Assembly (NCBI GenBank): GCA_038087875.1
Contig: JAXLNO010005073.1
Span: 62,001-126,000, forward strand
Origin: Malacoraja senta
Lineage: Eukaryota
Reading direction: 5' to 3'
DNA: 64,000 nucleotides
Shown here: piece by piece, positions 34,768 through 64,000 of the stretch
How the letters are laid out: each line of letters opens with the position of its first letter
Numbering within the stretch: position 1 is the stretch's first letter
Translations under genes and position numbers: made by a program
Notes under the pieces: model-generated
Databases searched by the model: none
What the model saw: only the letters and a program-made list of their open reading frames with translations
Told to the model about the DNA's origin: nothing

Positions 34768-34864
34768 ATGCACAAAATGAGGCCGAGGTTTCTCTGCAGC
34801 AGTTTGCCACTTGGTTTGATGTTCGTTTTCTTTGTTTTCCTGCTTCGACCAGTTTCCACACAGA
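34768..34864 (+). CDS. Ig-superfamily receptor, leader exon (MHKMRPRFLCSSLPLGLMFVFFVFLLRPVSTQ)
   Basis: Acceptor ttatttccaaacAG at 34763-34764, ATG at 34768 (second ATG at 34777), hydrophobic signal-peptide core, donor A|gtaagt at 34865, phase 1. Confidence 0.8.
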
Positions 34865-34939
34865 GTAAGTGCTTTCTCTTCGCCGGTCACAATCACCTTG
34901 CATTAATTATCATTGTCCGTGTAAACCCACATCCATTGT

Positions 34940-35720
34940 CAATCTCGCTTTACTCTCAACATCCCTGAATGTGTTGCTGCCTCATAAATCCACACCATCC
35001 TTCCTGGACCTCCATTCCACATCCCTGAATGTGTTGCTGCCTCATAAATCCACACCATCCTTCCTGGACCTCCATTCCACATCCCTGTATGTGTTGCTGC
35101 CTCACAAATCCACGCCATCCTTCCTGAACCTCCATTCCACATCCCCGTATGTGTTGCTGCCTCATAAATCCACACCATCCTTGCTGGACCTCCATTCCAC
35201 ATCCCTGTATGTGTTGCTGCGTCACAAATCCACACCATCCTTCCTGGACCTCCATTCCACATCCCTGAACGTGTTGCAGCCTCACAAGTCCACGCCATTC
35301 TTGCTGGACCTCCATTTCTGAGCCCATCCCATCAACTCCCTCTCCTTCTCCAGCACCGACACGGTCCTTATCAAAGTCAGAAATGGCCTCCTGTGAGCTT
35401 GTTGCAGAGTTAAACTCTCCCTCCTCATCCCGCTCAGCCTCTGCAGCCTTTGACACGGTTGTCCACACCATCCTTCCCAACATATCCTCACCACAGTCCA
35501 GGTGGGTGGAACTGCCCTCGACTTATCGATCCAGTCGCAGCCCGAGAACCACGCACAATGTCTTCACTTCACGCTCCCACAAAGTTCCTTCAAGACCAGG
35601 TGGAGTTCCTCCACTACCCCAACACTACCCCCTATCCCCACCTCCGTCTCCCTCCCTCCCACTCACTCATTTCTCTCATGTGATGAAATATCCCTGCATC
35701 AATCAGGCCAGGTTATTCCA
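34940..35720 (+). mobile_element. L2-type RT fragment in the intron after the leader exon
   Basis: SAAFDTVVHTIL (the LSAAFDTVDH motif) plus upstream RT sequence amplified as a minisatellite. Confidence 0.65.
34960..35317. repeat. 60-bp minisatellite, 6 copies
   Basis: Unit starts at 34960, 35020, 35080, 35140, 35200 and 35260. Confidence 0.95.
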
Positions 35721-35883
35721 CACACACATCTCTTCACAAACCGTGTCTTCCTCGCTGGGGTTTCCAAGGAAGATCACAACTGTCTGGAATTAAATTCAGT
35801 TCAAAATTAATGATTACAGATAAGGGGTGGGTGGGGAAAATGTGTTTTAAATATTAATTCTTCATTGTTCGTATTTGCAACAG

Positions 35884-36225
35884 AAAACAGAAATCGAATG
35901 CATTTCTTGGATAACCGAGGCGGCATTGTGTTAAACGGAACAGACAATTCTGAGAAAGACGCTGTTGTTGTCTGGGAATGGAATCCACACTCAGGGAAGG
36001 AAATCGGAATATTGACGACTTTTAGAAGAACGAGGGACTATTGGAGCGAAGTGAAGGCCGCTGGCGAGAGTATAGTGGACTTGTACCCGGAGATGTATGT
36101 GAATCCCTATACCCTTGATCTGACAATTGATAAACCCACATTTAAATGGGCGGGAATTTTCACTTTGGCTCAAACAGAACCGAGAAAGCAAATCCTGAAA
36201 CAATATGAAATATTTGGGATGAAAG
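35884..36225 (+). CDS. Ig domain 1 exon, V-like without cysteines
   Basis: Acceptor tttgcaacAG, donor AAG|gtgagt, 342 nt open and phase 1-1; strand pattern IVLNG...VVWEW...LDLTIDKPTFKWAGIFTL; paralogous to domain 5. Confidence 0.85.
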
Positions 36226-36799
36226 GTGAGTGGGTGCGATAAGGATCAATAATGTTTAATTGATCTCTGTAAATGTTGTCACCTATAATGATGAGAGATG
36301 GCGGGAATTGTGAGACTTCTTCCACCCGGTGAAAAGTTAAACAACTGGGGAAGTGTTTTTGTTAATTGATTCTGTAATGATCAGCAGGGGTGATAATAGT
36401 TTGATGACTTCACTGGGAACAGCAAATCAATGAATCGACCCGCAGCGAATACCATGGTCTTCTTGCCTGCACACGGTAAGGTGATCGCAGCAAGGTGGTA
36501 TGGAACCAATGTCTCCATGCAGTGGCCCCGGGGTGACACTGCTACTTAATGTTACCCTGTGACCAGGTGGATGGAAGTCCATCGCCTGTGGAACATGGGC
36601 TCTGCCATAGAGTTCACCTCTTGAGAGCAATCAGATACACCTTGAAGGAGTGGAAATAGATGCATTTTCAACAGTTTGTGAATATTTGAAACAGAGCATG
36701 TGTAAATACAACAACACCTGAATGTTGCCGGTTCCACCTGCAGTCACACGGTAAACAGCCGGCATTTCGCTGCGTCAATGTGACCAGCCACGGGTGTCA

Positions 36800-38660
36800 G
36801 GGGTCTGAGAGCACTTGGGGAGAAGTTGTTCTGACTTTCAGCTACGTGTCAGATTTAAGCCCGGTTATTGGATGAACCATGACATCCGCACTCTTCTGAA
36901 GTCCAGATTCCGGGCATTCAGGTCTGGAGATGCAGAGGTCTACAAGACGTTCAGATACGACCTTGGTAAGGCCATCAAAAGTCCAAAAGGGACTTTGCTC
37001 CAAGCTGGAGGATGAGACAGATGTACGGCAACTGTGGCAGGGCTTGAATGCAATCACCTCATACAAGGCAAAATCAGGAGGCAGCTCAAATGTCAGCGAA
37101 GCATCACTCCCTGACGAGCTCAATGCGTTCTATGCACGCTTTGATAGGGAGAACACCGATGTGCCTTCTCGAGACCCCATTCGCTGTGATAGTATTTCAG
37201 TCTCAGTCACAGAGGCCAACGTCAGGAAATCCTTCAGAGGGGTGAACCCTCGAAAAGCGCCTGGACCTGATGGTATACCTGGTCGTGTTCTAAAAACCTG
37301 TCTGGACCAACTGGCTGGAGTTTTTACGAACATTTTCAACCTCTCACTTCTGAGGTCTGAGGTTCCCACCAGCTTTAAAAGGGCATCAATTATACCAGTG
37401 CCCAAGAAGAGTAAGGTGACGTGCCTCAATGACTATCGACCTGTGGCACTAACACCTGTGGTGATGAAGTGCTTTGAGAGGTTGATCATGACGCAGATCA
37501 ACTCCTACCTCGACAAAAACCTGGACCCACTGCAGTTCGCTTACCGCCACAACAGATCAACGGTGGATGCGATCTCGCTGGCCCTCCACTCCGCTCTGGA
37601 CCACTTGGACAACAAAAACTCATATGTCAGGCTGTTATTCATCGATTACAGCTCAGCATTTAACACAATCATCCCCTCCAAGCTGGTTACCAAACTCGCA
37701 GAGCTGGGTCTCTGCGCATCCCTCTGCAATTGGATCCTCGACTTCCTCACTCTCAGACCACAGTCTGTTCGTGTTGGTGGAAATGTGTCAGCCTCAATAA
37801 CAATCAGCACGGGAGCACCTCAAGGCTGCGTGCTCAGTCCCCTGCTGCACTCACTCTATACTCATGACTGCGTAGCCGGTCACAGTGCGAACTCCATCAT
37901 CAAGTTCGCTGACGACACCGCTGTTGTGGGACGTATCACTGATGGGGATGAGTCAGAATATAGAAGAGAGATCGAGCAACTGACCAAATGGTTCCAGCAC
38001 AATAACCTGGCCCTCAACACCAGCAAAACCAAGGAATTGATTGTGGACTTCGGAAGGGGTAGGATATTTCTGAAGATCTCTCCTGGTCCCAGAACACTGA
38101 TGCAATTATAAAGTAAGCTCATCAGCGCCTCTACTTCCTGAGAAGATTACGGAGAGTCGGTTTGTCAAGGAGGACTCTCTCGAACTTCTACAGGTGCACA
38201 GTAGAGAGCATGCTGACCGGTTGCATCGTGGCTTGGTTCGGCAACTTGAGCGCACAGGAGCGGAAAAAGCTACAAAAGGTAGTAAACACTGCCCAGTCCA
38301 TCGTCGGCTCTGACCTCCCTACCATCGAGGGGATCTATCGCAGTCGCTGCCTCAAAAAGGCTGGCAGCATCATCAAGGACCCACATCATCCTGGCCACAC
38401 ACTTATCACTCCGCTGCCATCAGAGGATCCTGAAATCTGCAACATCCAGGTTCAGGAACAGCTGCTTCCCCACAGCCATCAGGCTATTAAACACAACTTC
38501 AAACAAACTGTGAACTACAACAGCCTATTGCACTTTATCTGTTTATTTATGTGTGTATATATATATTCTACGGTACATGGACACACTGATCTGTTCTGTA
38601 TTTATGCCTACAATATTATGTTGTGCTGCAGCAAGCAAGAATGTCCTTGTCCTATCTGGG
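36800..38660 (+). mobile_element. Rex1/Babar-type LINE with an internal deletion
   Basis: ORF 36930-38111 with [30 protein letters not shown] and KFADD; C-terminal ORF 38162; deletion near 38060 relative to the 48612 copy. Confidence 0.85.
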
Positions 38661-38716
38661 ACTTGACTTGTACAAACCACTACTCACTCTGAATCTCATT
38701 GATCTGTTTTTCACAG

Positions 38717-38986
38717 TTGAGGCAAGTCCACAGAGGCCTCTGCTGGGCAGTGACGTCACACTCAGCTGCACCATCTCCAGACTCTCAGATACAGTCAGTC
38801 TTCACTGGAGACCCATGGACTCATCCCAGCAGAACAGGAACAACACTGATCAGATCTGCCTGGATAACACGGTCTATCTGATGGTTCAACACGTTACAGT
38901 GGAGGATGGGAAGCTGTATGTGTGTGATGTGCAGGAAAACGGAAACATTGTTTACACAAGTAATGGAGATTTTACTGTATACAAGT
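38717..38986 (+). CDS. Ig domain 2 exon, C2-type
   Basis: Acceptor ttttcacAG, donor T|gtaagt, 270 nt phase 1-1; VTLSC...SLHW...LYVC. Confidence 0.9.
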
Positions 38987-40041
38987 GTAAGTGTAAACAC
39001 CTCCCATTGGATATCAAGTAGACACTTGTATCACGGTGCTTCTTGTAATATTATGTGTGCGCCCTGTGAAGAACTGTGGCAGTGACCAACTGCTCTCCAG
39101 TATAAAATGCTGCAATGATCAGGGAGAAGTTTACAGAAAGTCTCTCTCTCTGTGGAGCAGCTGCCTGCTTGTCTCTGTGTGACAGACACACAGCACAGGA
39201 GGGGGATGTCTTTCTGTAACCATTGTTCAGTAAAGTATTTTGTCAGTTTATCTTGCCATCAATGCTCCAGTATCTGAGACTGAGATACTGATACAGGACT
39301 CACGTCAAAGTGTCAGATAGAAAGTGTAGTCACCATGACAACCACCAGCACTTGCTGCTCACACTCACACTGGGGGTCCCGGCCCACACATCAGCACTGA
39401 ACAACAATCCATCCCCTCTCCCCTCACTGACCCTTCTCTCCAAGTCTGGTGTTGCTTGAAGTGATTCCAGCTGCTGCAGACTCGGGCTTCGGATCAGCAT
39501 TCAGCTGGGAGCAGGACCCGGTAACAGGGAAGGACAGGGAATCAATGGGTGTGAATGGGAGAGGGATGGTGGGAATAATGGGAATGAAGGGACGGGAAGA
39601 CCCGACCCACTTGAAGTGCCAACCTGTCCGGGTCAGTCCCCACGCAGGCATCCTCTGGGCTGCTTCTGTCCGCAGCCTGAACCTGCACCACCTCCTGCAG
39701 ACAGACTGACAGAGACATTCACCTCCCAGACCGCTCTCGGGAGTCTCCGGGAGGTTTCATTCCATCCCGGGAGATTCCCGGACAATCCGGGTGTGGGGGC
39801 GAACCTAATGTTGAAATGTAGAGTGGAATATCCAAACTTCACTGCAATTTACTGCCGTACAGGACATTGTATTTTATAAAGATCTGATGAGTTTAGTGCG
39901 GCATTCATGAAAGATGTTACATTTGAAACTTGATCAGCTGAACAAAACACCACGAATGTTTATAAGAATACGGTTGAGAATCTCTGTATGGCACGGTAAC
40001 TGTAATACTGAAAGGAGTTATCCTCTGTCTCTCTGATACAG

Positions 40042-40371
40042 ATTTACAGAGATACAGACTTTACCGCTCCAGCACAGATCACAGTGAACTTCACCTGGTT
40101 TGTTCTGTGAGTGGTAGCTATTCCCGTGCTCAGTGGACCTGGATATCTCATGACCTTCAACAACACAAAGAAGTAGCATCTGCACACCGGTCTCAGCCCA
40201 TCAATGTCAAAGGAACCGACTTCGGGAATCGACTGGTGACCTCAGGGAAACCCTTCGATGGCAAGGATTTCAGTGTGAGGATTGTCCCCGTTTTGTTTCA
40301 AGATGCCGGAGTTTACACATGTTATCTGGAATCATATCGATTTCCCACCATTGATCTAATCACAGTGAAAG
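40042..40371 (+). CDS. Ig domain 3 exon, V-type
   Basis: Acceptor ctctgatacAG, donor AAG|gtagga, 330 nt phase 1-1; LHLVC...QWTW...FSVRI...QDAGVYTC (canonical DxGxYxC). Confidence 0.9.
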
Positions 40372-40449
40372 GTAGGAGACAGAATGTTGCCACTGAGTTT
40401 ACTGATGAACTTATTGTTTAAAATGTAAACAACCTGCTTGTTTCCACAG

Positions 40450-40710
40450 TCACAGCTGAACCGTCTGATGCAGTGACTGAGGTAGACAACGTTACCCTGA
40501 CCTGCTCTGTGTCTCACGTCACTGGGTCAATGAGACTGGTTTGGATCAATGGCGATGGCAAAAGTGTTGGAGAAAAGACACTGACTGTGGAAGAGAAATC
40601 ACAGAGTCTGGTTATTCAGAAAGCTGAGAGAGGCAGAGGGAACTGGAGATGTGGTTTGTTTCATCAAGACCTGCCCCAGCTTGTTATCCCGTACTATCAG
40701 GAGCCCCGTG
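40450..40710 (+). CDS. Ig domain 4 exon, C2-type with WxC
   Basis: Acceptor tttccacAG after a 78-nt intron, donor G|gtaagt, 261 nt; VTLTC...LVW...NWRCGL. Confidence 0.9.
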
Positions 40711-41717
40711 GTAAGTGATAAGGGTTTGTTCTTCATACTTAGAGTCATGATTGAGTTTTGATGTCGCTTATTGATCCTGAAATTTGAGTGGAATATTTTC
40801 TTCCAGTTTGAGTGGTCTAACTGTTATGATCAATGAATTCTCAAATTTCAAATAACACTTCCCGAACCCCACTTCTCCCCCCCCTTCATTGTGCACGCAT
40901 TTATCCCACCACCCAGTTATCCTATACTCTTCCCTTCCTCTTTCAACTCATCTCCCACCCCTTCCAATTGCAGAGTTTTCCTTTTATGTTCTTGCTCCAC
41001 TTCCACCCATATCCCTCCCTCTGTTACTGATCTGACTGTAGATCAGTCAGTATTAGTTGACCTGATCTATGTCATGTTTTACTGCATGCCGCTGTGTACA
41101 CAAACAGTCATCATATTATCTGGTCTGTTAGTCCAGCCTCTAGTTAGATTCGTTGCTGAGCTTGAGCTTACAATACCTAAGTATTTGAGCTCTGTGTGTT
41201 TACTATAACAAACAACTTCTTCTTATGTATGGATCCTGTTATTACACATGTTTATACTGACAACCTTTTGTCTCCATTTCACCCCTCCATTTTGTCATTA
41301 CCTCAATCCATCTACTCATCACCATTCCCCACCTGTATCCACCTATCACTCACCATGCTTTGTCTCATGCCTACTTCCCTTCCCCAGTTGTCACTCTCCT
41401 ATTCCATCAGTCTGAGAATGCATCCTGACATGAAACGTCATCAATCCATTCCCTCCACAGATGCTGCCTGACCCATTGAGTTTCTCCAACACTTTGCGTT
41501 TGATCAACATTCCACAATCTGCAGTTTCTTGTGTCTCCATGGAGACCCACTGGTCAACGTGGACAGATTGCTGCAGAGGGCCTGTTTCCATGCTGTTCCA
41601 TGATGATGAATTATAACGTACAACTTAGTAAAGATTAATTCTCTGCAATATTGCTACTGACAAGGTCAGTGAAAAATTATTGTCCAACATTTACACATTT
41701 GTTCTCTTTTCCTACAG

Positions 41718-42062
41718 GAAGTGGACATTATATGTACTTTTTCCATCAGGAAGGCAACTTTGTATTGAAAGGACCAGACAGTCCTGGAAATGGCCCCATT
41801 GACTTGGAATGGAGGCCACACTCAGGGCAACAAACCACGAAGCGATTGGCCACTTTCCACAGAGAAGATCAGCAGTGGGACGTACAATGGAGTGATGAGT
41901 ACAATCAAATACCAGGCATTTCCCAGAGGATGCATGCGGACTGGGGTACCCTTAATCTGAGGATCAGGATGCCCACATTCAAACTTGCAGGACTGTTCAC
42001 CTGGACTCAAACAGAGCCCGCTGGGAAAATCCTGAGACAGTGGGAACTATTTGGGATCAAAG
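41718..42062 (+). CDS. Ig domain 5 exon, V-like without cysteines (paralog of domain 1)
   Basis: Acceptor ttttcctacAG, donor AAG|gtaata, 345 nt; FVLKG...LEWRPHSG...PTFKLAGLFTWTQTEP. Confidence 0.85.
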
Positions 42063-42673
42063 GTAATAGAGTCATAGTGTCACACAGCACTGAAACAGGC
42101 CCTTTGGCCCAATTCATCCATACTGACCAACTACCCATCTAAACATCCCATTTGCCCTCATTTGGCCCATATCCATTCAACCTTTTTTCCATCTACCTGT
42201 TTAAATGCCCTTTAAATGCTGTACCTGCATCAAACACTTCCTCTGCTCGATCTTTCCATAAAGTATGTTTAGGTACCACACTCTTTGTCAAAACTGCCCC
42301 TAATATTAAGGGGTATATCAAATCTGCCCCTCTCACCTTAAACATGTACTATCTAGTTGTTGATTCCCCAACCCTGGACAAAAGACCATGTGCGTTTACT
42401 ATAGATATGCCTCTCATGATTTTATTCACTCCCATATAATCTCTGTTAAAGACATCCAAGAAATATAATGTCTGAAGAAGGGCCTCAACCTGAAAAGTCA
42501 CCTATCTATGTTCTCTAGAGTTCAAAGGTCTTTTATTGTCACGTGTACCAATTAAGGGGCAGTGATATTCATATTACCAGACCTGCTGAATTACTCCTGC
42601 ACTTTATGTCCTTTTACATATTAACCAGCATCTGCAGTTCTGTGTTTCTACTATACTAAAAACATCCCTACCT

Positions 42674-43050
42674 GGAAGTGTTGATGTGGGAGACGAGGGG
42701 GCGAGGGGGACAGGTGGTCACTACCAGGAAGTGTTGATGTGGGAGACGAGGGGGCGAGGGGGACAGGTGGTCACTACCAGGAAGTGTTGATGGGGTAGAC
42801 GAGGGGGTGAGGGGGACAGGTGGTCACTACCAGGAAGTGTTGATGTGGGAGACGAGGGGGCGAGGGGGACAGGTGGTCACGACCAGGAAGTGTTGATGTG
42901 GGAGACGAGGGGGCGAGGGGGACAGGTGGTCACTACCTGGAAGTGTTGATGTGGGAGACGAGGGGGCGAGGGGGACAGATGGTCACTACCTGGAAGTGTT
43001 GATGTGGGAGACGAGGGGGCGAGGGGGACAGATGGTCACTACCAGGAAGT
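42674..43050. repeat. 53-bp G-rich minisatellite, 7 copies plus a partial unit
   Basis: GGAAGTG unit starts at 42674, 42727, 42780, 42833, 42886, 42939 and 42992. Confidence 0.95.
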
Positions 43051-43179
43051 TTTGAAGACATCACTGAGCACGGTAGCTCAACATTCAGCCGACTGTCAGT
43101 CTGCAGGAAAAAGACAATTCTGCCCACAGTAGTTCAGAAAGCTGTTGGTGAACTGAACCACATGTGTCTGTTTCCACAG

Positions 43180-43452
43180 TTGAGGCCGAGTCACCGAGGC
43201 CAGTGATAGGCAGTGACATCACCCTCAGCTGTACCATCTCCAGACTCTCAGATACCATCAGTCTTCACTGGAAACCAAGAGGCTCATCTCAGCAGAACAG
43301 GAGGAGCAACACTGATCAAACCCATCTGAATAACGCCGTCTATCTGATGATCCAACATGTTGGAGCAGGAAATCCCAATCTGTACACATGGGAAGTGCAG
43401 GAAAATACCTCCATTGTTCTCACTGGAGACACCAATGTCGAAGTGGATCAGG
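43180..43452 (+). CDS. Ig domain 6 exon, C2-type (paralog of domain 2; F-strand Cys replaced by Trp)
   Basis: Acceptor tttccacAG, donor CAGG|gtgagt, 273 nt; ITLSCTISRLSDTISLHW...LYTW. Confidence 0.88.
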
Positions 43453-43769
43453 GTGAGTCCAAAGCTGCCTTGCAGCAGGTATTAAATAGATCTTGATATC
43501 AAACTGTTCCACATGTTGTATAGTGAGCACTGACTCCACCCGTGGGCTTCCACACTGCAGGATGTGGACATTGCCTTTACCCTGGGACATGGTGTAAATA
43601 TAAAATGGTGGCACTAAGATTGATGGAGCCACACAGGAGAACCAAGAGATTCATTTCAGTTCACCTGCATGAATCAAAGAGAATAATATCCAGTGATGGA
43701 AATAACATCTAGTTTTCAGTGTATAACAGAACAGGAAAATATGAACTAATTCAAGTATAAATGCAGAGG

Positions 43770-44480
43770 AAATATCAGAATCAGAATCACATTTTATTGG
43801 CCACGTAATAATACACAGGGAATTTGACAGTGCTTTGCTCGCATAAGGTAAAAACACGATATACAACAGACAATTAAAAATAAAACATTATAATTTAAAC
43901 ATGTGAAAATAAAGTACCTGAGTAAAAAGAGGCTACCGACTTTTGGCTGTTGAGTAGAGCTACGGCTCGTGGGAAGAAGTTGTTTTTATGTCTGGCTGTG
44001 GCTGCTTTGACAATCAGGACTCACCTGCCAGAGGGAAGTGATTCAAAGAGTTTGTGGCCTGGGTGAGAGGGGTCAGAGATGATCTTACCCGCTCGCTTCC
44101 TGGTCCTTGCAGTGTACAGTTCATCAATGGAGGGAATGTTGCAGCCAATAACCTTCTCTGCTGATCGGACGATTCGCTGCAGCCTCCAGGTATCGTGCTT
44201 GGTGGCTGAGCCAAACCAGACCATGATGGAGAAGGTGAGGACAGACTCTATGATGGTAGTGTAAAACTGGACCATCATTGCCTGTGGCAGGTTGTGTTTC
44301 CTCAGCTGCCGCAGGAAGTACATCCTCTGTTGGGACTTTTTGACTGTGGAGTCGATGGTGGCCTCCCAATTAAGGTTGCTGGAGATGATGATTCCGAAGA
44401 AATTAAATGACTCCACAGTTGTGACTGTGGTGTTGTTGAAGATGAGTGGGGGAGGGGAGGGGGAGCTCTACAATCAGGAG
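43770..44480 (-). mobile_element. Rex1/Babar-type LINE 3' fragment, second subfamily
   Basis: ORF 44021-44416 (QQRMYFLRQLRK...LPSGR); (TCAGAA)n tail. Confidence 0.8.
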
Positions 44481-44589
44481 GGGAGGATTGAGTCTACAAT
44501 CAATTCCACTGTCTATAGAGCACTGAGCTTCAGGTTGTTACGATGTCAACAGGACACCAGCTTTATGATTAGGGTGACTTGGACATCTT

Positions 44590-44990
44590 GCTGAAGTAAG
44601 CATGCAGGTACAGCAGGCAATGGAGAAAGCAAATGGCATGTTGGCCTTCATAGCGAGATGATTTGAGTATAGGAGCTAAGAGATCCTACTGCAGTTGTAC
44701 GGGGCCCTGTTGAGACCACACCTGGAGTATTGTGTGCAGTTTTGGTCTCCTAGTTTGAGAAAGGACATTCTTGCTATCGAGGGAGTGCAGCATAGGTTCA
44801 CCAGGTTAATTCCTGGAATGGCGGACGGACATATGATGAAAGAATGGATCGACTGGGTATATATTCACTGAAATTTAGAAGGATGAGAAGGGATCTTATA
44901 GAAACGTATAAAATTATTAAGGGATTGGGCAGGCTAGATGCAGGAAAAATGTTCCCCATGTTGGGCGAGTCCAGAACCAGGGTTCCCAGC
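44590..44990 (+). mobile_element. CR1 RT C-terminal fragment
   Basis: gagaccacacctggagtattgtgtgcagttttggtctcc shared with the other CR1 copies. Confidence 0.85.
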
Positions 44991-45090
44991 TGACATCCCA
45001 GAGCCGGGGGTTTGTCCCTGCGGAAACTCACAACATTGTATCTCGGCGTGTGTGGAAACTAATTCTTTGTTCCCTGTCCCTCTCTTGCAG

Positions 45091-45429
45091 GTTTACATAA
45101 CAAGACGTACACAGTTTATCGCTCAGTCACAGATCACAGTCAACTCGACCTGATTTGTGAAGCTTCTCCTGAGCTCAGTGAAACCAAATGGACTTGGAGA
45201 TCACCACGTTTCCAGAATCAAGAGAAGGAAATAGTTTCTTCTCACAGGTCTGGGCCGATACATGTCAACAGGAGCTACTTTGGGAATCGACTGGAAACCA
45301 TAGAGGGAAATGTGAATGGCAAGAATTTCCATGTGAGGATTGTCCCCGTGCAGTTTGCAGATGCCGGAGTTTACACATGTTCCACGGGATCAAATATTTA
45401 TGTGACCATTGAACTAATCACAGTTACAG
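45091..45429 (+). CDS. Ig domain 7 exon, V-type (paralog of domain 3; absent from the ORF track)
   Basis: Acceptor ccctctcttgcAG, donor CAG|gtagga, 339 nt open; GLHNKTYTVYRSVTDHSQLDLICEASPELSETKWTW...FHVRIVPVQFADAGVYTC. Confidence 0.9.
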
Positions 45430-46235
45430 GTAGGAGACTGGATGTTACTACTTTCAAGAATTAAGTTACTGGTGTAGAGTTTCTAATCTGAGTGCAGACT
45501 GCAATGTCAGCAGAAATTCCCAAGTTTGAAGAATTATTTTACCTCCAGAGCTTCCTCTTCAACTTATTTGTATTTTGCTGAACCCCAAATCTGCTCTAAA
45601 CCAACATTATTGGGAAGCACATCAAATGTTATTTTCATTTATTTTGCTGAAAACACATTGTTTTATACATAAGAGAGGGAATATGATGAAATGTGATTCA
45701 CAAAGGTGCAAATGAGCTTCTATCGAAAATATTTAAAAATCATTCAACTTCTCTTAATACATTCCCCAAGTTTCTTTGACCCCAAACGACCCATCCTAAT
45801 TTTTGAAGGCTCACTGGACGCTTAAAACTGAGTGTATTTTGTGGAATTTATCGATTAATATTTACCTGGATGAGTGTTGTGGCCAAAACTGTGGCCAGAG
45901 ACAATGATGTGGGCATTGGTTGCTCTTTGTATAATTAGTTCAAACTGTTGTGAATGATTATGGAAAAGACACTTGGAGAGGTACATGGATGGGAAAGGTG
46001 CAGAGGGATATGGGCCCAATGTGGGAACATATTTTAGATGGAGCATCTTGGTCCGCATGGATGAGTTGGGCTGAATGGACCGAATTGTTTCATGCTGTGT
46101 GACTATGCCTCTAACTCTTGTTGTGTAATATAATTTTCCATACTTAGAACGCCAGATACTGGTGTCAAAGTACTGAGAAAAATACAACACAATCCAGACA
46201 AAATTCATTGTTTTACGATTTTCTTCTTTCCACAG

Positions 46236-46505
46236 TCACAACTGAACCATCTAGTGCAGTGACTGAGAGAAGAAACATTACCTTGACCTGCTCTGTGTCT
46301 CATGTCACTGAGTCAATAAGACTGGTTTGGATCAATGATGAAGGCAAAGTTGTAGAGCAGAAAAATCTCATTCAAACAAAGCAGGAGAACAATTCTTTGC
46401 AGCTGATTATTCCAATAGCTGATGGAGTAAGAAGGAAATGGACATGTGGTTTGTTTCATCAAAGAACAGCCAAGGTTGTCATTCCATATAATCTGCAGGT
46501 GAACA
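46236..46505 (+). CDS. Ig domain 8 exon, C2-type with WxC (paralog of domain 4)
   Basis: Acceptor ttctttccacAG, donor A|gtaagt, 270 nt; ITLTC...LVW...KWTCGL. Confidence 0.9.
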
Positions 46506-46649
46506 GTAAGTTTCTTAGCTTCTGCTCTTCGTTATCTCGACACAGAGTTCTTGTCACGTTGCTATTCTTTTTGGATAACTTTTAACATTCCATGTCTTAC
46601 TGCAAGTAGAGCATAATCATAGACATTTCCTTCAAACCTCTTGTCCATG

Positions 46650-47100
46650 CCTATAAGGTCACTTCTATTGTAAGTAGTCCAGGTCTCTGAAGCACATGTG
46701 AGCACATGGATCACTACTGCTGGCAGACCACTGACCAAGACCTGTGTTGGCCATCTCATTGAAGGTGATCGGGAATTTCATCATCAATGTCTGTCCTTGT
46801 TGATAAGTGTCTCCACAGGTATGAATACTGGTCCAGTAGTATGAACACCAGTGTGTCACTGTGAACCTTTTTGTCAGAGGTCAGTATAGTAAGGTGGGCA
46901 GCTTGGTGCAAGATCTTTGCCATAACACCCAAACTGTGCCACTTAAAGATCACAAACATAGTGAAAATCATCTTACAAATAGTTGTACAAGTTTCTTTCC
47001 CCTGTTCTGATGCTGCAAAACATTACAGCGGTTGAAGCATCCACAGTAACTTCACCAAAGGCTGCCATGTGAGAACAGAAGATGTGGGGGAGGGAATACT
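46650..47100 (-). mobile_element. Decayed RTE-clade LINE fragment
   Basis: DIDDEI and AVVI..L..ASETWT motifs on the minus strand. Confidence 0.55.
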
Positions 47101-47124
47101 GATGTCTTCACCTTGTCTGACCAT

Positions 47125-47426
47125 GGCGGCTCAGTGGTAGGGTTGCTGCCTTACAGCGCCAGGGACCCGGGTTCAATCCTGACTACAGGTGCTGTCTGTA
47201 TGGAGTTTGTACCTTCATCCCGTGCCCTGTGTGGGTTTTCTCCAGGATTTCCGGTTTTCTCCCAAATTCCAAAGATGTACAAGTCTGTAGGTTAATAGGC
47301 TTGGTTTAATTGTATGTTGTCCCTGGTGTGTGTAGGATAGTGCTAGTCTGTGGGAATCGCTGGTTGGTGTGGACTCGGCGAGCAGAAGGACCTGTTTCCG
47401 CTCTGTATCTCTAAACTAAACTAAAC
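47125..47426 (+). mobile_element. tRNA-derived HE1/V-SINE-like element (3' fragment also at 48195-48320, minus strand)
   Basis: A-box-like GGCTCAGTGG, B-box GGTTCAATCC, V-domain-like core, CR1-type 3' end and (CTAAA)n tail. Confidence 0.8.
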
Positions 47427-48611
47427 ACGCCCATTCCTCCCAATCCCACCCATCCGTTAATCCCTGCCCTTCATGTGGCCCCAAGCCTCGGTGAAAGACA
47501 TTTTGTACAATGCTGACATAAGGCAAAGCACTGATCCCTAACAGAGGAAGATCCTGTCAACACCCAGGCACAAAGAAACAATCTCCACCACACATAGATC
47601 AATGAAGAGTCAGTGAAGCACAAAGTGGAAAGTATCAATGTCCCAACAGGAACATTTCAATTCCTCACAGATAATCACATCATCCAATCATAGAATTGTG
47701 GAATGGTTGTAGCACAGAAGGTGGCCATTTGACCCATCATATCCATGCTAACTCTCATCCAGTGCAACTCGCTAATTCTACCCCCTCTCCTTTTGCCATT
47801 ACATTGCAGCTTTTTAATCACTTTATATTTGTCCAATTATCTCTGGAAAGCCACGATAGAACCCAGCTCCCCAACTGATGCAGATAGTACACTTCAGACT
47901 CCAACTACCTGCTGCCTAAAAAGATTGTCCTCAAGTCATTCTAGCATTTTTTCCCCTTTATTTTAAACCAATACCTTTTTGTGCTCAGCCTTTCCACTGA
48001 AGGGAGCATCCTTCCACAATCCATTCTGGTCAGACTGAATAAATGATGCATAAATGAACAATGATGCCATTGATGTGATGAAAGAGCATTATTGACTCTT
48101 GTCTTCAAACTCTCTCTTCAGTGTGCCATGGTAATAACTGGACAGAGAACAGCCATAAAAAGAATCTCAATTATACCAACCATGTTTACTGTTTAGTTTA
48201 GAGATACAGAGCGGAAACAGGCCCTTCGGCCCACCGGGACCACGCCAACCAGCGATCCCCGCATATTAACACTATCCTACACCCACTAGGGACAATTTAT
48301 ACATTTACCAAACCAATTAAAGGGACGGAGATATCAATCAGTGAGTGAATAGATTAGTTGGTGTGTGGAATTAATGCATGGATCAACCATCTCCAATTTT
48401 ACACTAACAACACAGGAAGATGTGTTCATTAGGATTGCAATAATAATGTGTTCAACCTCATTGACATCAGTAAGCAATGGTTACATGCACAGTACAGTTT
48501 TAGTACTTGAAGACCAAAATTAATTTTTGGAGTTGAAAATCGGAATGAAAAATCATAATAATAATCAGCAGGACAGATAGCAACTGTGAAAGAGGAACAA
48601 CTGTGAAAGAG

Positions 48612-49390
48612 CAACAAAACCAAGGAACTGATTGTGGACTTTGGAAGGGGTAGGATGGGGACCCACAGTCCCGTTTATATCAATGGGTTGATGGTGGAAA
48701 GGGTCAAGAGCTTCAAATTCCTGGGCGTGCACATCTCTGAAGATCTCTCCTGGTCCGAGAACACTGATGCTATTATAAAGAAAGCACATCAGCGCCTCTA
48801 CTTCGTGAGAAGATTACGGAGAGTCGGTTTGTCAAGGAGGACTCTCTCTAACTTCTACAGGTGCACAGTAGAGAGCATGCTGACCGGTTGCATCGTGGCT
48901 TGGTTCGGCAACTTGAGCGCCCAGGAGCGAAAAGGACTACAAAAAGATGTGACCACTGCCCAGTCCATCACCGGCTCTGACCTCCCTACCATAGAGGGGA
49001 TCTATCGCAGTCGCTGCCTCAAAAAGGCTGGCAGCATCATCAAGGACCCACATCATCCTGGCCACACACTCACCTCCCCGCTACCTTCAGGTAGAAGGTA
49101 CAGGAGCCTGAAGACTGCAACGACCAGGTTCAGGAATAGCTACTTCCCCACAGCCATCACGCTATGAAACTCAACTCAAACAAAACTCTGAACATTAATA
49201 GCCCATAATCAGTTTATTTCCACTTTATCTGTTTTATTTATTCATGTGTGTATATATTTATACAATGGTATATGGACACACTGATCTGTTCTGTATTCAT
49301 GCCGTCTATATTCTGTTGTGCTGAAGCAAAGCAAGAATTTCATTGTCCTAACTGGGACACACGACAATAAATTCTCTTGAATCTTGAATC
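48612..49390 (+). mobile_element. Rex1/Babar-type LINE 3' fragment
   Basis: ORF 48634-49167, near-identical to 38040-38650; (AATCTTG)n tail; a tail-only copy at 33330-33475. Confidence 0.85.
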
Positions 49391-50228
49391 TTGAGTCCAG
49401 CCATGATCGCATTAAATGGCGGTGCTGGCTCGAGGGGCTGAATGGCCTACCCCTGCACCTATTGTCTATTGTCAAAGATCCTTTCTTTGAATCTGACAAC
49501 GTTTTTTTCATCATAAAACATGAACTCACTTCTTTCCCTTTCCACGGATACTGCTCAAACGGCTGAGTATTTCTAACGTTTACAGTTCTTGTGCTCCTGG
49601 TTAGAGAGGATTGAAGCTGGAGGGCAATATCCACTCTGTTGTCAGCAGTGCTCATTCAACCATTGTTCCAGGCTTAGACTATGATAGACATTTGTCCACT
49701 GTACAGTGGGAAGTATCACAGCTGAATCAGCTACTTTATCAACCATCAGCTCCCATCTCCTGCCTGAGAAATGTCAGCTGATTGTAACCAAGAAATAGAA
49801 ACTTGTGTGAATGTTTACAGTCTCTAACTGATGGCTACTGAGGCAAGTTGTGGCTCTCTGATCTTTCTGAGTACGGTCAATTAATCTGGGGGAGAAAAGA
49901 CACAATGTGCTGGAGTAACTCAACGGGTCAGGCGGAATCTCTGGAGAACATGGATAGGTGAGGTTTTGGGTCTGGACCCTACTTCAGACTAAAGGGCTGT
50001 GACCCGCAATGTCAACTGCCTAACCTGCTGAGTTTCTCCAACACTTTGTGTCTTTTATTGGTAAACTGTCATCTGCAGTACCTTGTGTCTCAGTGAATCT
50101 GGATCACAAGTTAAACTCAAGACTTCTGATCTACATTAGTCAGTGTGGTTAATGCCTGGTCTTTGGGGGAGCTTTTGAACGATGTCCATTTATTCTACAA
50201 ATGTGAACTGTGTTTATTATTTTGACAG

Positions 50229-50336
50229 GGAATCACCCTTTTATAATCAGATTTGTTGTAATTATCGGAGGTCTGGCTGTTCTCATCATCATTATACTGG
50301 CAGTGGAGTGCTGTCAAAGAAAGCGCAAGCCTACAG
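50229..50336 (+). CDS. Transmembrane and juxtamembrane exon (RNHPFIIRFVVIIGGLAVLIIIILAVECCQRKRKPT)
   Basis: Acceptor attttgacAG, donor CAG|gtaaag, phase 1-1; hydrophobic run followed by CC and a basic stop-transfer cluster. Confidence 0.8.
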
Positions 50337-50577
50337 GTAAAGTACATGAAGACATCCTTAATGCAGCACAGATTCCCCACATTATCAATCACAATGTTAT
50401 CTCTGTTACAAGGAGAAAAGAACAATATGTTTTGGATAAGAAAAGTATCTGTTTGTGCTTATGTTGTTGAGAAATTGATTTCAGACTTTTTGTGTTCAAT
50501 TAAAGCATTATTTATGCAATGTGGATTGTCTACCTGTCTACCTGCGTTGCCAGGAGGAGTCTGCTGTATGATTTCAG

Positions 50578-50649
50578 GTGCTGTTCTGCCATGATCTGAC
50601 CACGTGGTGATTGTGTCACCATCCCCTGTGTAAACCATTATCAAATAAA
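50578..50649 (+). CDS. Candidate terminal exon (GAVLP*, then 3' UTR with AATAAA)
   Basis: Acceptor gatttcAG gives phase 1, stop at 50592-50594, AATAAA at 50644-50649; alternative tails are possible. Confidence 0.35.
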
Positions 50650-52039
50650 CATGCCAGAAGTTGAAGTATAGCTAGTGTAGTCATGTAGAAAATATGGTCC
50701 TCAATTTGCCCTCAACATGTTCCTATTTACTGAGGGATGAATATTGGCCAGGAAACCAGGAGACCAAGGTATCTCCACTGCACTTTGGTGATTCACGTTC
50801 CTAAATCTATTGTGTCCCAAGAGGCCAGAAGGGGCCTCAGTTAAACAAATAATCTTTAATCTGGTGAGGCCAATGCTGCAGCAATCCCACATGGCAACAG
50901 AGTGTTTGGCTCAACTGTGTTCAAATTTGGGGTTGTGCCTGAGGGTTTATTCTGTGTTGTTGAACAAACTGATCAGACGGGTATCGGGCTAGTACAACAG
51001 TTCATCAAGGTCACTAACACATGGAATACTCAGTTCTTAAAGCTTCCCTTATATTTATATAAATCAACATGTTTTTTCCATGAAAAAAATAAACCATTCC
51101 AATAACTGATCATTAGAAATATAAAATTACACATTGAATATATTAACTGTATGTACAATTATAAATTCAGTTGCTTCTTTACTTGTCATCTTGACTTGTG
51201 AAAACTCTGCAGTGCAAAGATGCATTTGTCCATTCTCCAGATATTTTCAACTCTGCTAGATACCTCCACATGTTGGCCTTACCTCATTCATGGTCTCCTG
51301 TGACGTTCCCATCCATGTTCTGTCCAGCAATGGCTCTATCGTGTAATCCATACCGTAACTCAAATCCATGCTCATCCTGTGCCTCATATTCTCCATCACC
51401 ATCTTCTTGGGCATCCTGTCCATGTAACACATGATCTATCCATGTAATTTGACTTCTGTCACTTATTCCCATCATTGCACCACCATTTTATTCACAATAT
51501 TTTTCCTGAACTGAATCCAAATTCTTGGATTATCAAATAAGATTTAAACCTGTGCTTCTGGACTATTAATCTCAAAGAGTCTTGGATTAATATCCAGTTA
51601 ACCTATGACAATCCAAAAGTACATCAAAATATGCAAACTAAATATGTACCCATTAACAGGAGTCAGCACAACACATTTGAAAGTAAGTTGGAGAGAAACA
51701 CATCACCAATTCTGAATCTGGTAATGTTGGGAAAAATTAATTACATATTGTGTTTACCATATTTGTGGAAAACGGAGTTAATGGAATCTCTATTGCGTTT
51801 TGTTCAATGTGTGAAATTAAATCGTGTAAAATCATGAGGGGAATAGATAGGGTGAGTGTGCAGAGTCTTTGACCCTGTATAAAGTAATCAAAAACTAGAA
51901 GACATAGGTTTAAGTTGAGAGGAACCTGAGTGGCAGCTTTTTCACTCAGATGATGGTGGTTATATGGAACAAGCTGACAGAGAAGGTCGTTGAGGAAGGA
52001 ACTATAACTGCATTTAAAAGAACTTAGGTAGGTACATGA

Positions 52040-52960
52040 ACCACCGGGTGGCGCCGCAATGGCTGCCTCGCCAACAGTCTGTCTCGTCCTTTTCCTTCTT
52101 TGATGTTTTTTAGTATGTGTTAAATGGATGTTTTAGTGTTCTTTAGCTTTATTTTATGTGGGGGGTGGAGGGAGGTTGGGGGAACCTTTTTAAATCTCTT
52201 ACCTCGACGAAGATGCATTTTTTTCCGTATCGTATCTCCATCTGCACTGTGGCCTAACATCGAGGTGCTGGCGGCCTCTTGCTGGGGATTGACTTTGGGA
52301 GTTCCAACCGCGGGAGCCTGCAGGACTTAACATCATGGAGCTGATGGTCCCTGTCGGGGATCGACCTTGGAGCTCCAACCGTGGGAGCCTGCAGGATATA
52401 ACATCGTGGAGCACGTGGTCCCTTGGTTAGGGATCGACTACGGGAGCTCCAACCGTGGGAGCCTGCAGGATATAACATCGTGAAGCACGTGGTCCCTGTC
52501 GGGGATCGACTACGGGAGCTCCAACCGTGGGAGCCTGCGGATTTAGCATCGTGGAGCACGTGGTCCCTTGTTTAGGGATCGACTACGGGAGCTCCAACCG
52601 TGGAGCCTGCGGATTTAGCATCGTGAAGCACGTGGTCCCTTGGTTAGGGATCAACTTCGGGAGCTCCAAGCCGCACGAGCTTCGACCGCCCTGACCTGGG
52701 GGCTTCAATCGTCAGCTGTGGGAGCTTCCATCACCCCGACTGCGAATGGTTCGACTGCCCCAACCGCGGGAGAATAAAGAGTGAAGAAGATTAGAATTTA
52801 TCGCCTTCCATCACAGTGAGGAATGTGGAGAATCCACTGTGGTGGATGTTTATATTAACTTTTCTGTAGTTGTGTGTCTTGTTGCTTTTTCTAGTATGAC
52901 GATGATAAATTGAGTTTAATTGCACCTTAATTGGTGCACATGACAATAAAATACATTTGA
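52040..52960 (+). mobile_element. Related GC-rich element with an internal ~72-bp tandem array
   Basis: Same layout (GC-rich head, T-rich tract, G-run, CCATCACAGTG hairpin, 3' hairpin plus AATAAA); about 5.5 units at 52297-52680. Confidence 0.6.
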
Positions 52961-52990
52961 AGCTTTGGAGAAGAAAGGTTAAGGTCATGG

Positions 52991-53217
52991 TGTAGCGGAG
53001 CCTGCTGGCGCACGTAGATACCGAACCCGGCGTTGGGAAGCCACGGTCACGTGACTCGGGAGGGGCTGCTGTTTTCGTGCGGTTTCGTTTTTGCGCCACA
53101 GTTGGTTTGCTGACCACCGTTGTGATCAGACGTGTATGCAGAGACCTGTTTGCTAAGGAGCGAGTGTTCAATAAAAACCGTTCAGAAAACGTAGTCGTCG
53201 TTTCTGCATCCGCTAAA
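52991..53217 (+). mobile_element. Solo LTR, 227 bp
   Basis: Terminal inverted repeat TGTAGCGGA / TCCGCTA(A)A, internal AATAAA, 4-bp TSD ATGG at 52987-52990 and 53218-53221. Confidence 0.7.
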
Positions 53218-54923
53218 ATGGGTCAATTGCAGGCACATGGGACTGGCTTGGATGGGGCAACTTGGATGGTATAGACTAGTTGAGCCAAAGGACATGGTTC
53301 TGTGCTGTATGACTCTATGACTCTTTGACTTTATAAAAGGTGAAAACAATTTATATTGTGCCCTCTCTCTGAACAGGTTTGGGCAATCAAAGACAGACAG
53401 CTCCACCATCAAAAAGAAACACAGAAGGTGAATCTCACCTTTAAGGCAACCTTGAAGAAATTCAGCAGATGGCAGGTGTAGTGGCCATTTGGCCTGTTTT
53501 GCATGTCATTGATGATGGCATGTGCCTTTAAATTTTAGACTGCCCGTTGTATTGTGGATGGGATTTATGGCGTGTTTTGGTGCGTGTTTGGAACTTAGAT
53601 GCTTGCGCAGAAGTCTAGTTTTTAGATTAGTTTGGAGAGACGACGGAGAAGGTCAATCCTTCGACCATGTCAATGTTACGGAGACACGAGGAGTTTTGTA
53701 ATGTTTAAAGTTGCAAGTTGGAATTGAAGGAAGATTGCAGTAACGAGTCGGAAGAAACTTGGATGTATCTTGCTGTTTACCTTCAACAATAAAGCATTTA
53801 TTCAACAAAAGACTGTGTGTTGAAGCTTTATGAGTGAAGAAGCTCTGAAGGTCTCTGAGGAAGCTTGCATGCGTATCGAAGATATTCCCTTATCCATTCT
53901 CATCCAAATAGCGGCTAGAGAATTCGTTTCTCGAAAGATAAGAAAAATCTGCCGTTACAATAAGTCGAAGGGAACCTCCGGCAGGGGGGTTAAATACTAG
54001 TCCCAGAGAGTGGGACAGAAGATTAAATCGAAGGGAACCTCCGGCAGGGGGGTTAAATACTAGAAAGGGACATTGAGTGTGGTCTTTGACTGTGCTGCAG
54101 TCTTTAAAGGTACATCGCTTAACGGTGAACTACTGCAAGGTCCAGACCTTACCAACTCACTCATTGGAGTTCTCATCAAATTTAGGCAAGAACCGATTGC
54201 TTTAATGGCTGACATCAGATCGATGTTTCATCAAGTGAAAGTAGCTGGTGAACATATTGATTACCTGCGATTCTTATGGTGGCCTGAAGGGGATGTGCAG
54301 CAAGATCTTGTTGATTACCGGATGAAAGTACATCTCTTTGGAGCAGTGTCATCTCCAAGTTGTGCGAACTTCGCTTTAAGGAACACCACAGAGGATAATA
54401 AAGATTATTTCCCAGAGGAGGTAATTTCCACTTTGAAAAATAATTTCTACGTGGACGATTGCCTAAAATCCATATCTACTGAGCAGAAAGCAATTCAAAT
54501 GGTAAAACACCTGACCTCTCTCTGCAATAAGGGAGGATTTGTACTTTCCAAGTGGATCAGCAACAATCGTGTTGTATTGGAAAGCATTCCACCAGATGAC
54601 AGAGCTGAAGAAACCCAGGAGTTGGATTTAGTTAAAGACAATTTGCCAATGGAAAGGGCACTGGGACTGCACTGGTGCATGGAGACGGATGTGTTTAAGT
54701 TTAAATTGTCGATTCAGGAGCGACCATGTACAAGAAGGGATATCTTTTCTGTGATTGGCTCAGTATACAACCCTTTGGGATTTCTTGCACCATTTACACT
54801 GCCAGCCAAGTTAATTTTACAAAACCTTTGTAAGGAAAAACTTGGATGGGATGAGAGTATAACTCAAACATCCTCGCACCGTTGGCCAGAATGGTTAACG
54901 GACTCCATAAAATGTCAAAGTTT

Positions 54924-57900: not shown

Positions 57901-58323
57901 TTATGCGGTTTATCCCCAAATTCAAAGTGCTCTTGTTTTGTAATTTGAAAAAGTCTTATAAGTTTGGCAGATAATAATTTATTTAATTTAAATTTTAAAA
58001 TTATTATTTTATTATGTTTATCTATTGATGGATCTTTAGCATTATCTATATTCATTTGTCTAATAAGTTCTTCTAACTGTCTTTGTTCATTCTTATTATT
58101 TTTATTTTGAAAAGCTTGATATGAAATTATAATACCCCTAATGTATGCTTTAAAAGATTCCCAAAGTAAAGTAGGCGATATATCTGAAGTATCATTTGTT
58201 TGAAAAAAGACCTCCATTTGTTCTTTTAAATATATACTCGCTTGTGGATCTTTTAAAATTTGAGAGTTAAATCTCCAGAATGATTTATTCTTAGACAATC
58301 CTTCCAGTTTTAAAAAGAAAGTT
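54924..58323 (-). mobile_element. 5'-truncated L1-clade LINE (ORF2 in three frameshifted pieces)
   Basis: ORFs 57558-58298, 56104-57540 (LDAEKAFD, RQGCSLSP, YADD) and 55258-56073 (C-terminal Cys-rich region); short A tail. Confidence 0.92.
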
Positions 58324-60082: not shown

Positions 60083-60157
60083 TCCTCGTTAGTATCGTGT
60101 TTAGTATCCCTGCCTGTCACGCGTTAGACCGGGGTTCAATTTGCCGACGAGGAGCCA
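60083..60157 (+). pseudogene. tRNA-Asp(GTC)-like sequence with 3' CCA inside the BEL 3' untranslated region
   Basis: 72 nt colinear with vertebrate tRNA-Asp (about 10 differences from the human sequence as recalled), GTC anticodon, followed by CCA; anticodon stem broken. Confidence 0.85.
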
Positions 60158-60526
60158 CAGGGTTTAATTCCCTGACCTTTTGCTTTTGATATATGTATAG
60201 CCTTTATGGCCATTTTTTAAATGTTTATTAGTAATTGCCTCATTAGATACTCGGAACAATTAGGAGCCGGTATGTAGTGGCCATTTGGCCTGTTTTGCAT
60301 GTCACTGATGATGGCATGTGCCTTTAAATTTTAGACTGCCCGTTGTATTGTGGGTGGGATTTATGACGTGTTTTTAGGCGTGTTTGGAGCTTAGATGCTT
60401 GTGCAGAAGTCTAGTTTTTAGATTAGTTTGGAGAGACGATGGAGAAGGTCAATCCTTCGACCATGTCAATGTTACGGAGACACGAGGAGTGTTGTAATGT
60501 TTAAAGTTGCAAGTTGGAATTGAAGG

Positions 60527-63500: not shown

Positions 63501-63726
63501 TGGAACTCTCTGCCACAGAGGGTAGTTGAGGCCTGTTCATTGGCTATATTTAAGAGGGAGTTAGATGTGGCCCTTGTGGCTAAAGGGATCAGGGGGTATG
63601 GAGAGAAGGCAGGTATGGGATACTGAGTTGGATGATCAGCCATGATCATATTGAATGGCGGTGCAGGCTCGAAGAGCCGAATGGCCTACTCCTGCACCTA
63701 TTTTCTTTGTATCTATGTATCTATGT
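60527..63726 (+). mobile_element. CR1-clade LINE (EN, RT and 3' tail) inserted in the BEL 3' LTR
   Basis: EN NARS/TETW/YRPP/GDFN/SDHN; RT 61947-63389 with PQGS and FADD; in-frame stops; (TATGTATC) tail; splits the LTR with loss of about 3 bp and no TSD. Confidence 0.95.
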
Positions 63727-63952
63727 ATTGCAGTAACGAGTCGGGAAGAAACTTGGATGTATCTTGCTGTTTACCATCAACAATAAAGCATTTATTCAAC
63801 AAAAGACTGTGTTGAAGCTTTATGAGTGAAGAAGCTCTGAAGGTCACTGAGGAAGCTTGCATGCGTATCGAAGATATTCCCCTCATCCATTCTCATCCAA
63901 ATAGCGGCTAGAGAACTCGTTTCTCAAAAGATAAGAAAAATCTGCCGCTACA

Positions 63953-64000
63953 CCGATGTTGGGTGAGTCCAGAACCAGGGGCCACTGTTTAAGAATAAGG
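63953..64000 (+). mobile_element. CR1 3' fragment
   Basis: ccgatgttgggtgagtccagaaccagggg matches the MLGESRTRG segment of the other CR1 copies. Confidence 0.7.

Follow-up and report, generated by a model that had tools for sequence, protein, structure and literature searches.

The window analysed in this study is a stretch of 64,000 nucleotides from Malacoraja senta (GenBank assembly GCA_038087875.1, contig JAXLNO010005073.1, positions 62,001 to 126,000 of the forward strand), and all coordinates below count from its first letter unless stated otherwise. It contains a spliced gene for a membrane receptor with eight immunoglobulin (Ig) domains, numbered D1 to D8 from the amino terminus. A first-pass annotation, made from the sequence without database searches, had proposed such a gene, and rebuilding the gene model recovered all ten exons from the leader to the transmembrane (TM) exon at the same coordinates. 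With the first cytoplasmic exon, found by comparison with relatives, the features of the locus are as follows.

34768-34864, + strand: leader exon 1, with ATG at 34768, a signal peptide of 32 amino acids plus a split codon, and a GTAAGT donor; it matches the Leucoraja leader exon (locus L001) at 87.5% identity
35884-36225, + strand: D1, cysteine-free V-like domain; no Pfam match
38717-38986, + strand: D2, C2/I-type domain, F strand YVC (not WxC); Pfam ig, Ig_3, C1-set
40042-40371, + strand: D3, V-set domain with canonical Cys pair; Pfam V-set at 27.9 bits, above the cut-off
40450-40710, + strand: D4, C2 domain, WxC present as WRC; Pfam ig/Ig_3
41718-42062, + strand: D5, second cysteine-free V-like domain and D1 paralogue; 41% identical to D1
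43180-43452, + strand: D6, D2 paralogue, F-strand Cys replaced by Trp (YTW); 60% identical to D2; Pfam ig/Ig_3
45091-45429, + strand: D7, V-set domain and D3 paralogue; Pfam V-set at 30.1 bits; 54% identical to D3
46236-46505, + strand: D8, C2 domain and D4 paralogue, WxC present as WTC; 56% identical to D4; Pfam ig/Ig_3
50229-50336, + strand: TM exon, ending in a juxtamembrane CC and a basic cluster, with a phase-1 donor; 83% identical to the Leucoraja TM exon
53377-53475, + strand: cytoplasmic exon 1, of 99 nt and in phase 1 on either side, homologue of the LYxN exon of the family; found by tblastn with the tails of relatives
53442-53444, + strand: in-frame TAA at the Tyr codon of the YxN motif; found by comparison with the Leucoraja exon

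The introns separating the leader, D1 to D8 and TM exons are all GT-AG and all in phase 1, and the joined coding sequence from leader to TM comprises 2635 nt (878 codons and one base) free of stops, just as the first-pass annotation had it. The NxS/T sites (D1, D2, D4, D6, two in D7 and two in D8) and, in the TM segment, GGLAV followed by CC and QRKRK also lie where they had been placed. The gene had further been called intact, which holds for the ectodomain and the TM segment and fails for the tail, the TAA in the first cytoplasmic exon having been missed. WxC is found in D4 (WRC) and D8 (WTC) and nowhere else among the eight domains, D2 reading YVC and D6 YTW, while D1 and D5 have no cysteine at all. 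Amino-acid identity between the cognate domains of the two halves (D1/D5, 41%; D2/D6, 60%; D3/D7, 54%; D4/D8, 56%) is accompanied by a lack of meaningful similarity between non-cognate pairs. Pfam searches with single exons returned generic Ig families, with nothing for D1 or D5, and no CD4-specific Pfam family was matched by the gene model. When the gene model was compared with the whole window by tblastn, no additional family exon was detected.

Splicing was examined in Logan contigs of four runs (X1 to X4; two organisms, two studies), which are 90-95% identical to the window and were mapped to 38700-43460 and 45080-51079. The exons are covered, and in run X1 the repeats reach huge depth, with a depth of zero over unique intron sequence. 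Exon joints were found between D2 and D3 (X1, X2), D3 and D4 (X3, record 16), D4 and D5 (X1, X3; 40710|41718, with GT..AG ends), D5 and D6 (X1, X2), and D7 and D8 (X1, X2, X4), and a single X1 contig of 691 nt links the end of D5, by way of D6 and D7, to D8. The joint between D8 and the TM exon was deduced for two contigs (X2 record 11 and X4 record 27) from their lengths and from equal depths at 50279-50295. Lacking the introns, the contigs derive from spliced RNA, and D4 and D5 therefore lie on one transcript in close relatives. The D4-D5 junction is the point on which the first-pass annotation had staked its single gene, two four-domain genes being the expected outcome otherwise, and it is present. 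Together with a colinear alignment over 878 residues (E = 0) to annotated proteins described below, the spliced contigs that reproduce the junctions make the gene model real, far beyond chance. The locus is thus one eight-domain gene with two V-C2-V-C2 cassettes.

Downstream of the TM exon, tblastn with the tail of the Leucoraja protein P0092 identified cytoplasmic exon 1 (E 3e-7), which is flanked by AG (acceptor) and GT (donor), is ~90% identical to the Leucoraja exon at the DNA level, and would be entered from the open phase-1 end of the TM exon. Comparison of the two exons revealed CAC CTT TAA GGC AAC in the window and CAC CTT TAT GGC AAC in Leucoraja, where TAT encodes the Tyr of LYGN. 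The predicted product ends at residue 900 with a tyrosine-free tail of 30 residues. Of two 31-mers sampled within 63 bases that have the TAA at their centre, both are contained in run X7, and one in X12, which carries another organism label and belongs to another study; the sampled 31-mers lend weak support to the TAA being real. The exons for the EYMSV, IHYxSI and VIYAQI motifs of relatives were searched for in 50337-64000 by tblastn with the tails of those relatives, and cytoplasmic exon 1 was the sole match. In Leucoraja, cytoplasmic exons 2-4 follow cytoplasmic exon 1 at a distance of 5.4-8.2 kb, a space that in the window is taken up by retroelement open reading frames (ORFs). Several such ORFs occupy 54073-63389, in the ~10 kb after cytoplasmic exon 1, among them a reverse transcriptase/RNase H-like ORF split by the insertion of a minus-strand long interspersed element (LINE) and a plus-strand LINE with endonuclease and reverse transcriptase ORFs. 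Retroelements may have displaced the other tail exons to beyond the window.

The gene model is colinear over leader, D1 to D8 and TM with annotated elasmobranch proteins, at 56-81% identity over up to 878 residues (E = 0). The closest relatives are Leucoraja erinacea LOC129701495 (81%) and LOC129701493 (83%, D5 to TM), followed by proteins of Rhinoraja and Amblyraja; by these nearest relatives the host is a skate and not a shark. Locus L001 of Leucoraja has the order leader, D1 to D8, TM and then four cytoplasmic exons. At this locus LOC129701493 as annotated by NCBI begins at D5, and a matching leader with D1 to D4 is found just upstream in the same orientation (L001 5179-9251 versus 10001-40694); NCBI seems to have split or truncated the eight-domain gene there.

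A profile of D1 and D5 searched against 1.84 billion representative proteins yielded 34 matches, all of them family members (E from 3e-4 down to 6e-136) and all "uncharacterized" by source name, from the sharks Scyliorhinus, Heterodontus, Heptranchias and Pristiophorus and the batoids Mobula, Narcine, Rhinoraja and Amblyraja; outside the elasmobranchs, it matched the chimaera Callorhinchus, sturgeons, an eel and a loach. Searching large collections with the family alignment added many more, including eight-domain proteins of 850-1000 amino acids in Carcharodon, Cetorhinus, Rhincodon, Stegostoma, Pristis, Hypanus, Hemitrygon and Leucoraja, and returned family members only, with no named family among them. 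A nurse shark record of the family carries the name "obscurin-like". The literature searched contained no description of such a receptor family in skates or sharks, nor any for "obscurin-like" together with nurse shark, and a single-cell shark paper made no relevant mention. The family is thus present in genome annotation and unnamed, and its description was not found in the literature searched. It is a multigene family with many copies per genome; four-domain relatives occur in chimaera, sturgeon, bichir and eel, and one catshark protein of 1710 amino acids has at least three further cassettes. A tree that took each four-domain cassette as a unit grouped the second cassette of every eight-domain protein, shark or batoid, in one clade (Shimodaira-Hasegawa-like approximate likelihood-ratio test, SH-aLRT, 99), and the doubling therefore took place before sharks and rays diverged. 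The first-pass annotation had seen a lineage-specific member or look-alike of twice the usual length; with eight-domain relatives annotated in many sharks, rays and skates and a doubling older than their split, this has to be given up, and the doubled ectodomain is a conserved family trait rather than a novelty of the species.

A profile built from sturgeon, paddlefish, bichir and eel members also reached cyprinid multi-Ig proteins that bear the automatic name "B-cell receptor CD22-like" (P0126-P0152, E down to 2e-24), and these may be teleost members of the same receptor family.

We then compared 56 tails of the family. LYxN is present in the first tail exon in 25, and 41 contain two or more motifs matching the consensus used here for the immunoreceptor tyrosine-based inhibitory motif (ITIM), (I/V/L/S)xYxx(I/V/L), typically IHYxSI and VIYAQI about 30 residues apart. 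In twelve other members (P0117, P0116, P0008, P0003, P0030, P0080, P0083 and P0094 among them) a lysine is conserved within the TM segment (GYLLVKL...), and the tail is short and devoid of ITIM or tyrosine motifs. Members possess either an ITIM tail or a TM lysine, which is the pattern of paired inhibitory and activating receptor families; by this analogy the family looks like a paired-receptor system, and the TM lysine suggests that its bearers could be the activating partners of the ITIM-bearing members. KIR, LILR, Siglec/CD33-related receptors, CEACAM1 and the teleost NITR/LITR are likewise multigene with two ITIMs or a TM lysine and a short tail, and families of the KIR/LILR type share the fast-evolving ectodomain and the copies with truncated tails. 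Unlike theirs, the ectodomain here consists of CD4-type V-C2 rods, in four-domain cassettes repeated once, twice or four times; the likeness is confined to the logic of the tails, and no homology is shown by it.

The relationship of the V-C2 module to known receptors was addressed with profiles and predicted structures. Family profiles of 62-64 sequences were informative against the Protein Data Bank (PDB), where two-sequence profiles gave no specific family. The D3-D4 profile (64 sequences), compared with 177,635 PDB sequences, found human and mouse LAG-3 first (E 3.9e-14 to 1.2e-11), in an alignment spanning strands E-G of LAG-3 D1 and the whole of D2 in which the WxC of the family is aligned to the human WGC; a second match fell on LAG-3 D3-D4. 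CD4 came next (E 4e-8), and generic Ig proteins (pIgR, CEA) were not far behind LAG-3. The D1-D2 profile matched NCAM and antibody constant domains, and LAG-3 was absent among its best 60 matches. Across the family, the WxC tryptophan is near-invariant at the D4/D8 position, and the consensus at the D2 position is YxC.

AlphaFold (AF2) models of a close relative were confident (predicted local distance difference test, pLDDT, 89.1 for D1-D2 and 88.6 for D3-D4), and showed a V followed by a C2 domain, D1 having an Ig V-like fold. In both models one long strand passes from strand G of the V domain into strand A of the C2 domain (103-118 and 102-116), as expected of a rigid V-C2 pair in the CD4/LAG-3 family. 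Foldseek placed mouse LAG-3 D1-2 first for the D1-D2 model. TM-scores near 0.6 were reached for both models by CD4 and LAG-3 only, which were also the sole two-domain fits of low root-mean-square deviation (rmsd); antibody and T-cell receptor matches of similar Z had an rmsd of 12-13 A, and therefore one of their domains fits, not both. In the Swiss-Prot part of AFDB, a TM-score of at least 0.6 was attained by CD4, LAG-3 and LY6G6F only, a shape search of the Atlas returned CD4, CD4-1, G6F and g6f-like, and by language-model features the sturgeon and sawfish members lie nearest to "g6f-like" clusters (scores 0.94-0.97). Nothing usable came back when D1 on its own was put to an ESM Atlas feature search, and searches from a sturgeon member and from a bony-fish alignment retrieved unnamed and cyprinid "CD22-like" proteins only, with no CD4, LAG-3 or G6F. 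A CD2/SLAM-like reading of the Cys-free D1 was also considered and rejected, as models of SLAM and CD48 fit poorly (TM-score 0.38-0.42). In these models the V-C2 pairs are predicted to be rigid rods of the CD4/LAG-3/G6F type. The doubled CD4/LAG-3-like V-C2-V-C2 architecture claimed by the first-pass annotation is in this respect borne out, Pfam (V-set for D3 and D7, ig/Ig_3 for the C2 domains), the D3-D4 profile and predicted structures being in agreement.

How much of the gene is read correctly, and what it is to be called, can be weighed against four other explanations. It is very improbable that the locus holds two adjacent four-domain genes, D1-D4 and D5-TM. The family does have four-domain members, and NCBI annotates the Leucoraja counterpart (P0092) as a separate gene from D5 onward, but the GT..AG joint 40710|41718 in the X1 and X3 contigs contradicts such a division, D4 is not followed by a TM exon, D5 is preceded by a phase-1 acceptor only and by no leader exon, and more than 15 species have annotated proteins of eight domains. 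A less remote, though still unlikely, explanation is that the copy encodes a working inhibitory receptor, either with the TAA as an assembly error or rare allele, or with cytoplasmic exon 1 skipped and the TM exon spliced to ITIM exons beyond the window. With phase 1 on either side the 99-nt exon is symmetrical, the space equivalent to that of the Leucoraja exons is filled by retroelement ORFs so that the exons may sit past 64000, isoforms in Mobula differ by whole tail exons, and the ectodomain is free of defects. On the other side stand the TAA-spanning 31-mers in X7 (and one of the two in X12), the lack of any ITIM exon in the 10.5 kb after cytoplasmic exon 1, and transcript evidence that stops at the TM exon. 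Several points tell against our own reading of a single gene with a truncated tail. The spliced contigs belong to related species, with 90-95% identity, and a paralogue could be their source, and no read or contig extends past the TM exon, so that the use of cytoplasmic exon 1 is only predicted for this species. The TAA is carried by the assembly and two sampled 31-mers and could be an allele or an error, and skipping of the symmetrical exon would leave the reading frame unchanged and, should exons 2-4 exist beyond the window, could bring back an ITIM tail. Finally, the best-supported differences between the window and the related contigs (partial lists) amount to 34 nonsynonymous versus 8 synonymous codons, and to 23 versus 4 for the second organism; differences that are mostly nonsynonymous fit diversifying selection or relaxed constraint, and the contigs may be paralogous, so we read them only as apparently fast evolution of the ectodomain.

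As to identity, the first-pass annotation had allowed for a member of the CD4/LAG-3 family. Four-domain shark CD4, with a CxH tail, and LAG-3, with an (F/Y)xxL(D/E) tail, have been identified in a conserved region by Takizawa et al. (PMC10768021), who give WxC in both D2 and D4 as the hallmark of the CD4/LAG-3 family and used CD4/LAG-3 as top database matches as a criterion of membership (PMC10768021). The V-C2-V-C2 order, the WxC in D4 and D8, the juxtamembrane Cys, LAG-3 as the top PDB profile match and CD4/LAG-3 as the best structural fits would all suit a true CD4 or LAG-3 gene, or one duplicated directly from such a gene, with a doubled ectodomain. [quoted passage not shown] As the first-pass annotation had remarked, no CD4-locus neighbour lies within the window; the flanks of the gene there contain retroelement ORFs only. 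LAG-3 differs further in having four domains instead of eight and a single tail exon, where this family has LYxN plus ITIMs (in Leucoraja spread over four exons) and no cysteines in D1 and D5, and its true shark gene exists elsewhere (PMC10768021). CD4 has the LCK-binding motif Cx(C/H), which this family does not, the similarity to it is weaker than to LAG-3 (E 4e-8), and the ectodomain is doubled here.

Teleost G6F/G6f-like is a four-Ig collagen receptor of thrombocytes, and G6fL combines four Ig domains with a YxN motif and an activation motif of the immunoreceptor tyrosine-based type (ITAM) (PMC3528668). The family might accordingly be the cartilaginous-fish counterpart of G6F/G6f-like, with the gene acting in haemostasis and not in immune recognition, a proposal that we regard as doubtful. 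It would fit the position of the sturgeon and sawfish members next to the "g6f-like" clusters, the TM-scores of 0.60-0.75 obtained with LY6G6F and g6f-like models, and a YxN in the first tail exon that is common to the family. The ITIM-type motifs of relatives, however, are ~30 residues apart and do not form an ITAM (two YxxL/I 6-12 residues apart); G6f-like carries an ITAM, whereas members of the present family have ITIM-type motifs or a TM lysine. The high copy number in each genome and the TM-lysine form as a paired counterpart are also unlike the single-copy G6f-like, and G6F and G6f-like are not known to form large multigene families. Sturgeon- and bichir-based searches gave unnamed or "CD22-like" names only. 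The likeness to G6F/G6f-like comes from predicted structure and language-model features; in this copy the Tyr codon of the YxN motif is TAA.

We consider it probable that the locus is a spliced gene for an eight-Ig type I receptor and a tail-truncated copy of a large, old and unnamed elasmobranch family. The product would be a type I membrane receptor with a signal peptide, two tandem cassettes (Cys-free V-like, C2, V, and C2 with WxC), a TM helix and a short tail, the juxtamembrane CC being a candidate for palmitoylation. In the ITIM members, which are the majority, LYxN and the two ITIMs would recruit SH2 phosphatases and Grb2, making them inhibitory by analogy, and the minority of members with a TM lysine and a short tail would signal through an adaptor, making them activating by the same token. 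By its TM segment and first cytoplasmic exon, the present copy appears to be of the inhibitory type, in which a single T-to-A change would have turned the Tyr codon of YxN into TAA. The predicted product of 900 amino acids would keep the whole ectodomain and the membrane anchor, and the copy is most likely, as far as its sequence can tell, a signalling-dead receptor (decoy or tail-less) or one at the start of decay.

A broader scenario, put forward tentatively and on balance improbable, is that the family forms an ancient sister lineage of CD4, LAG-3 and G6F that expanded in cartilaginous fishes into a paired system resembling KIR/LILR, in which CD4-type rods would see ligands resembling class II of the major histocompatibility complex (MHC), or other polymorphic ones, by way of the Cys-free D1 and D5, and tail-less copies would serve as decoys. 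The origin of the helper-T-cell co-receptor in cartilaginous fishes is still debated, and the V-C2 rod of the CD4/LAG-3 type appears to have been reused in these fishes on a large scale, with ITIM tails or TM-lysine anchors. The family, expressed and unnamed, can be tested for ligands (MHC class II, collagen and others) and for paired signalling, and may help to root the CD4/LAG-3/G6F group. To this the present copy adds a natural tail-less variant; taken alone, it is one more member of a family already annotated.

Repeats were noted in and around the gene. Intron 1 contains six copies of a 60-bp tandem repeat at 34959-35316 (92% matches), across which long spurious ORFs run on both strands. 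The D1-D2 intron (36930-38692) and the D8-TM intron (48634-49167) both contain fragments from a single LINE-type family of reverse transcriptases, their C-terminal peptides being near-identical, and this repeat showed very high contig depth in all four runs. Upstream of the gene, an uninterrupted ORF of 1369 amino acids (10798-14907, + strand) resembles, on inspection by eye, the gag/protease/reverse transcriptase/integrase polyprotein of a long terminal repeat (LTR) retroelement.

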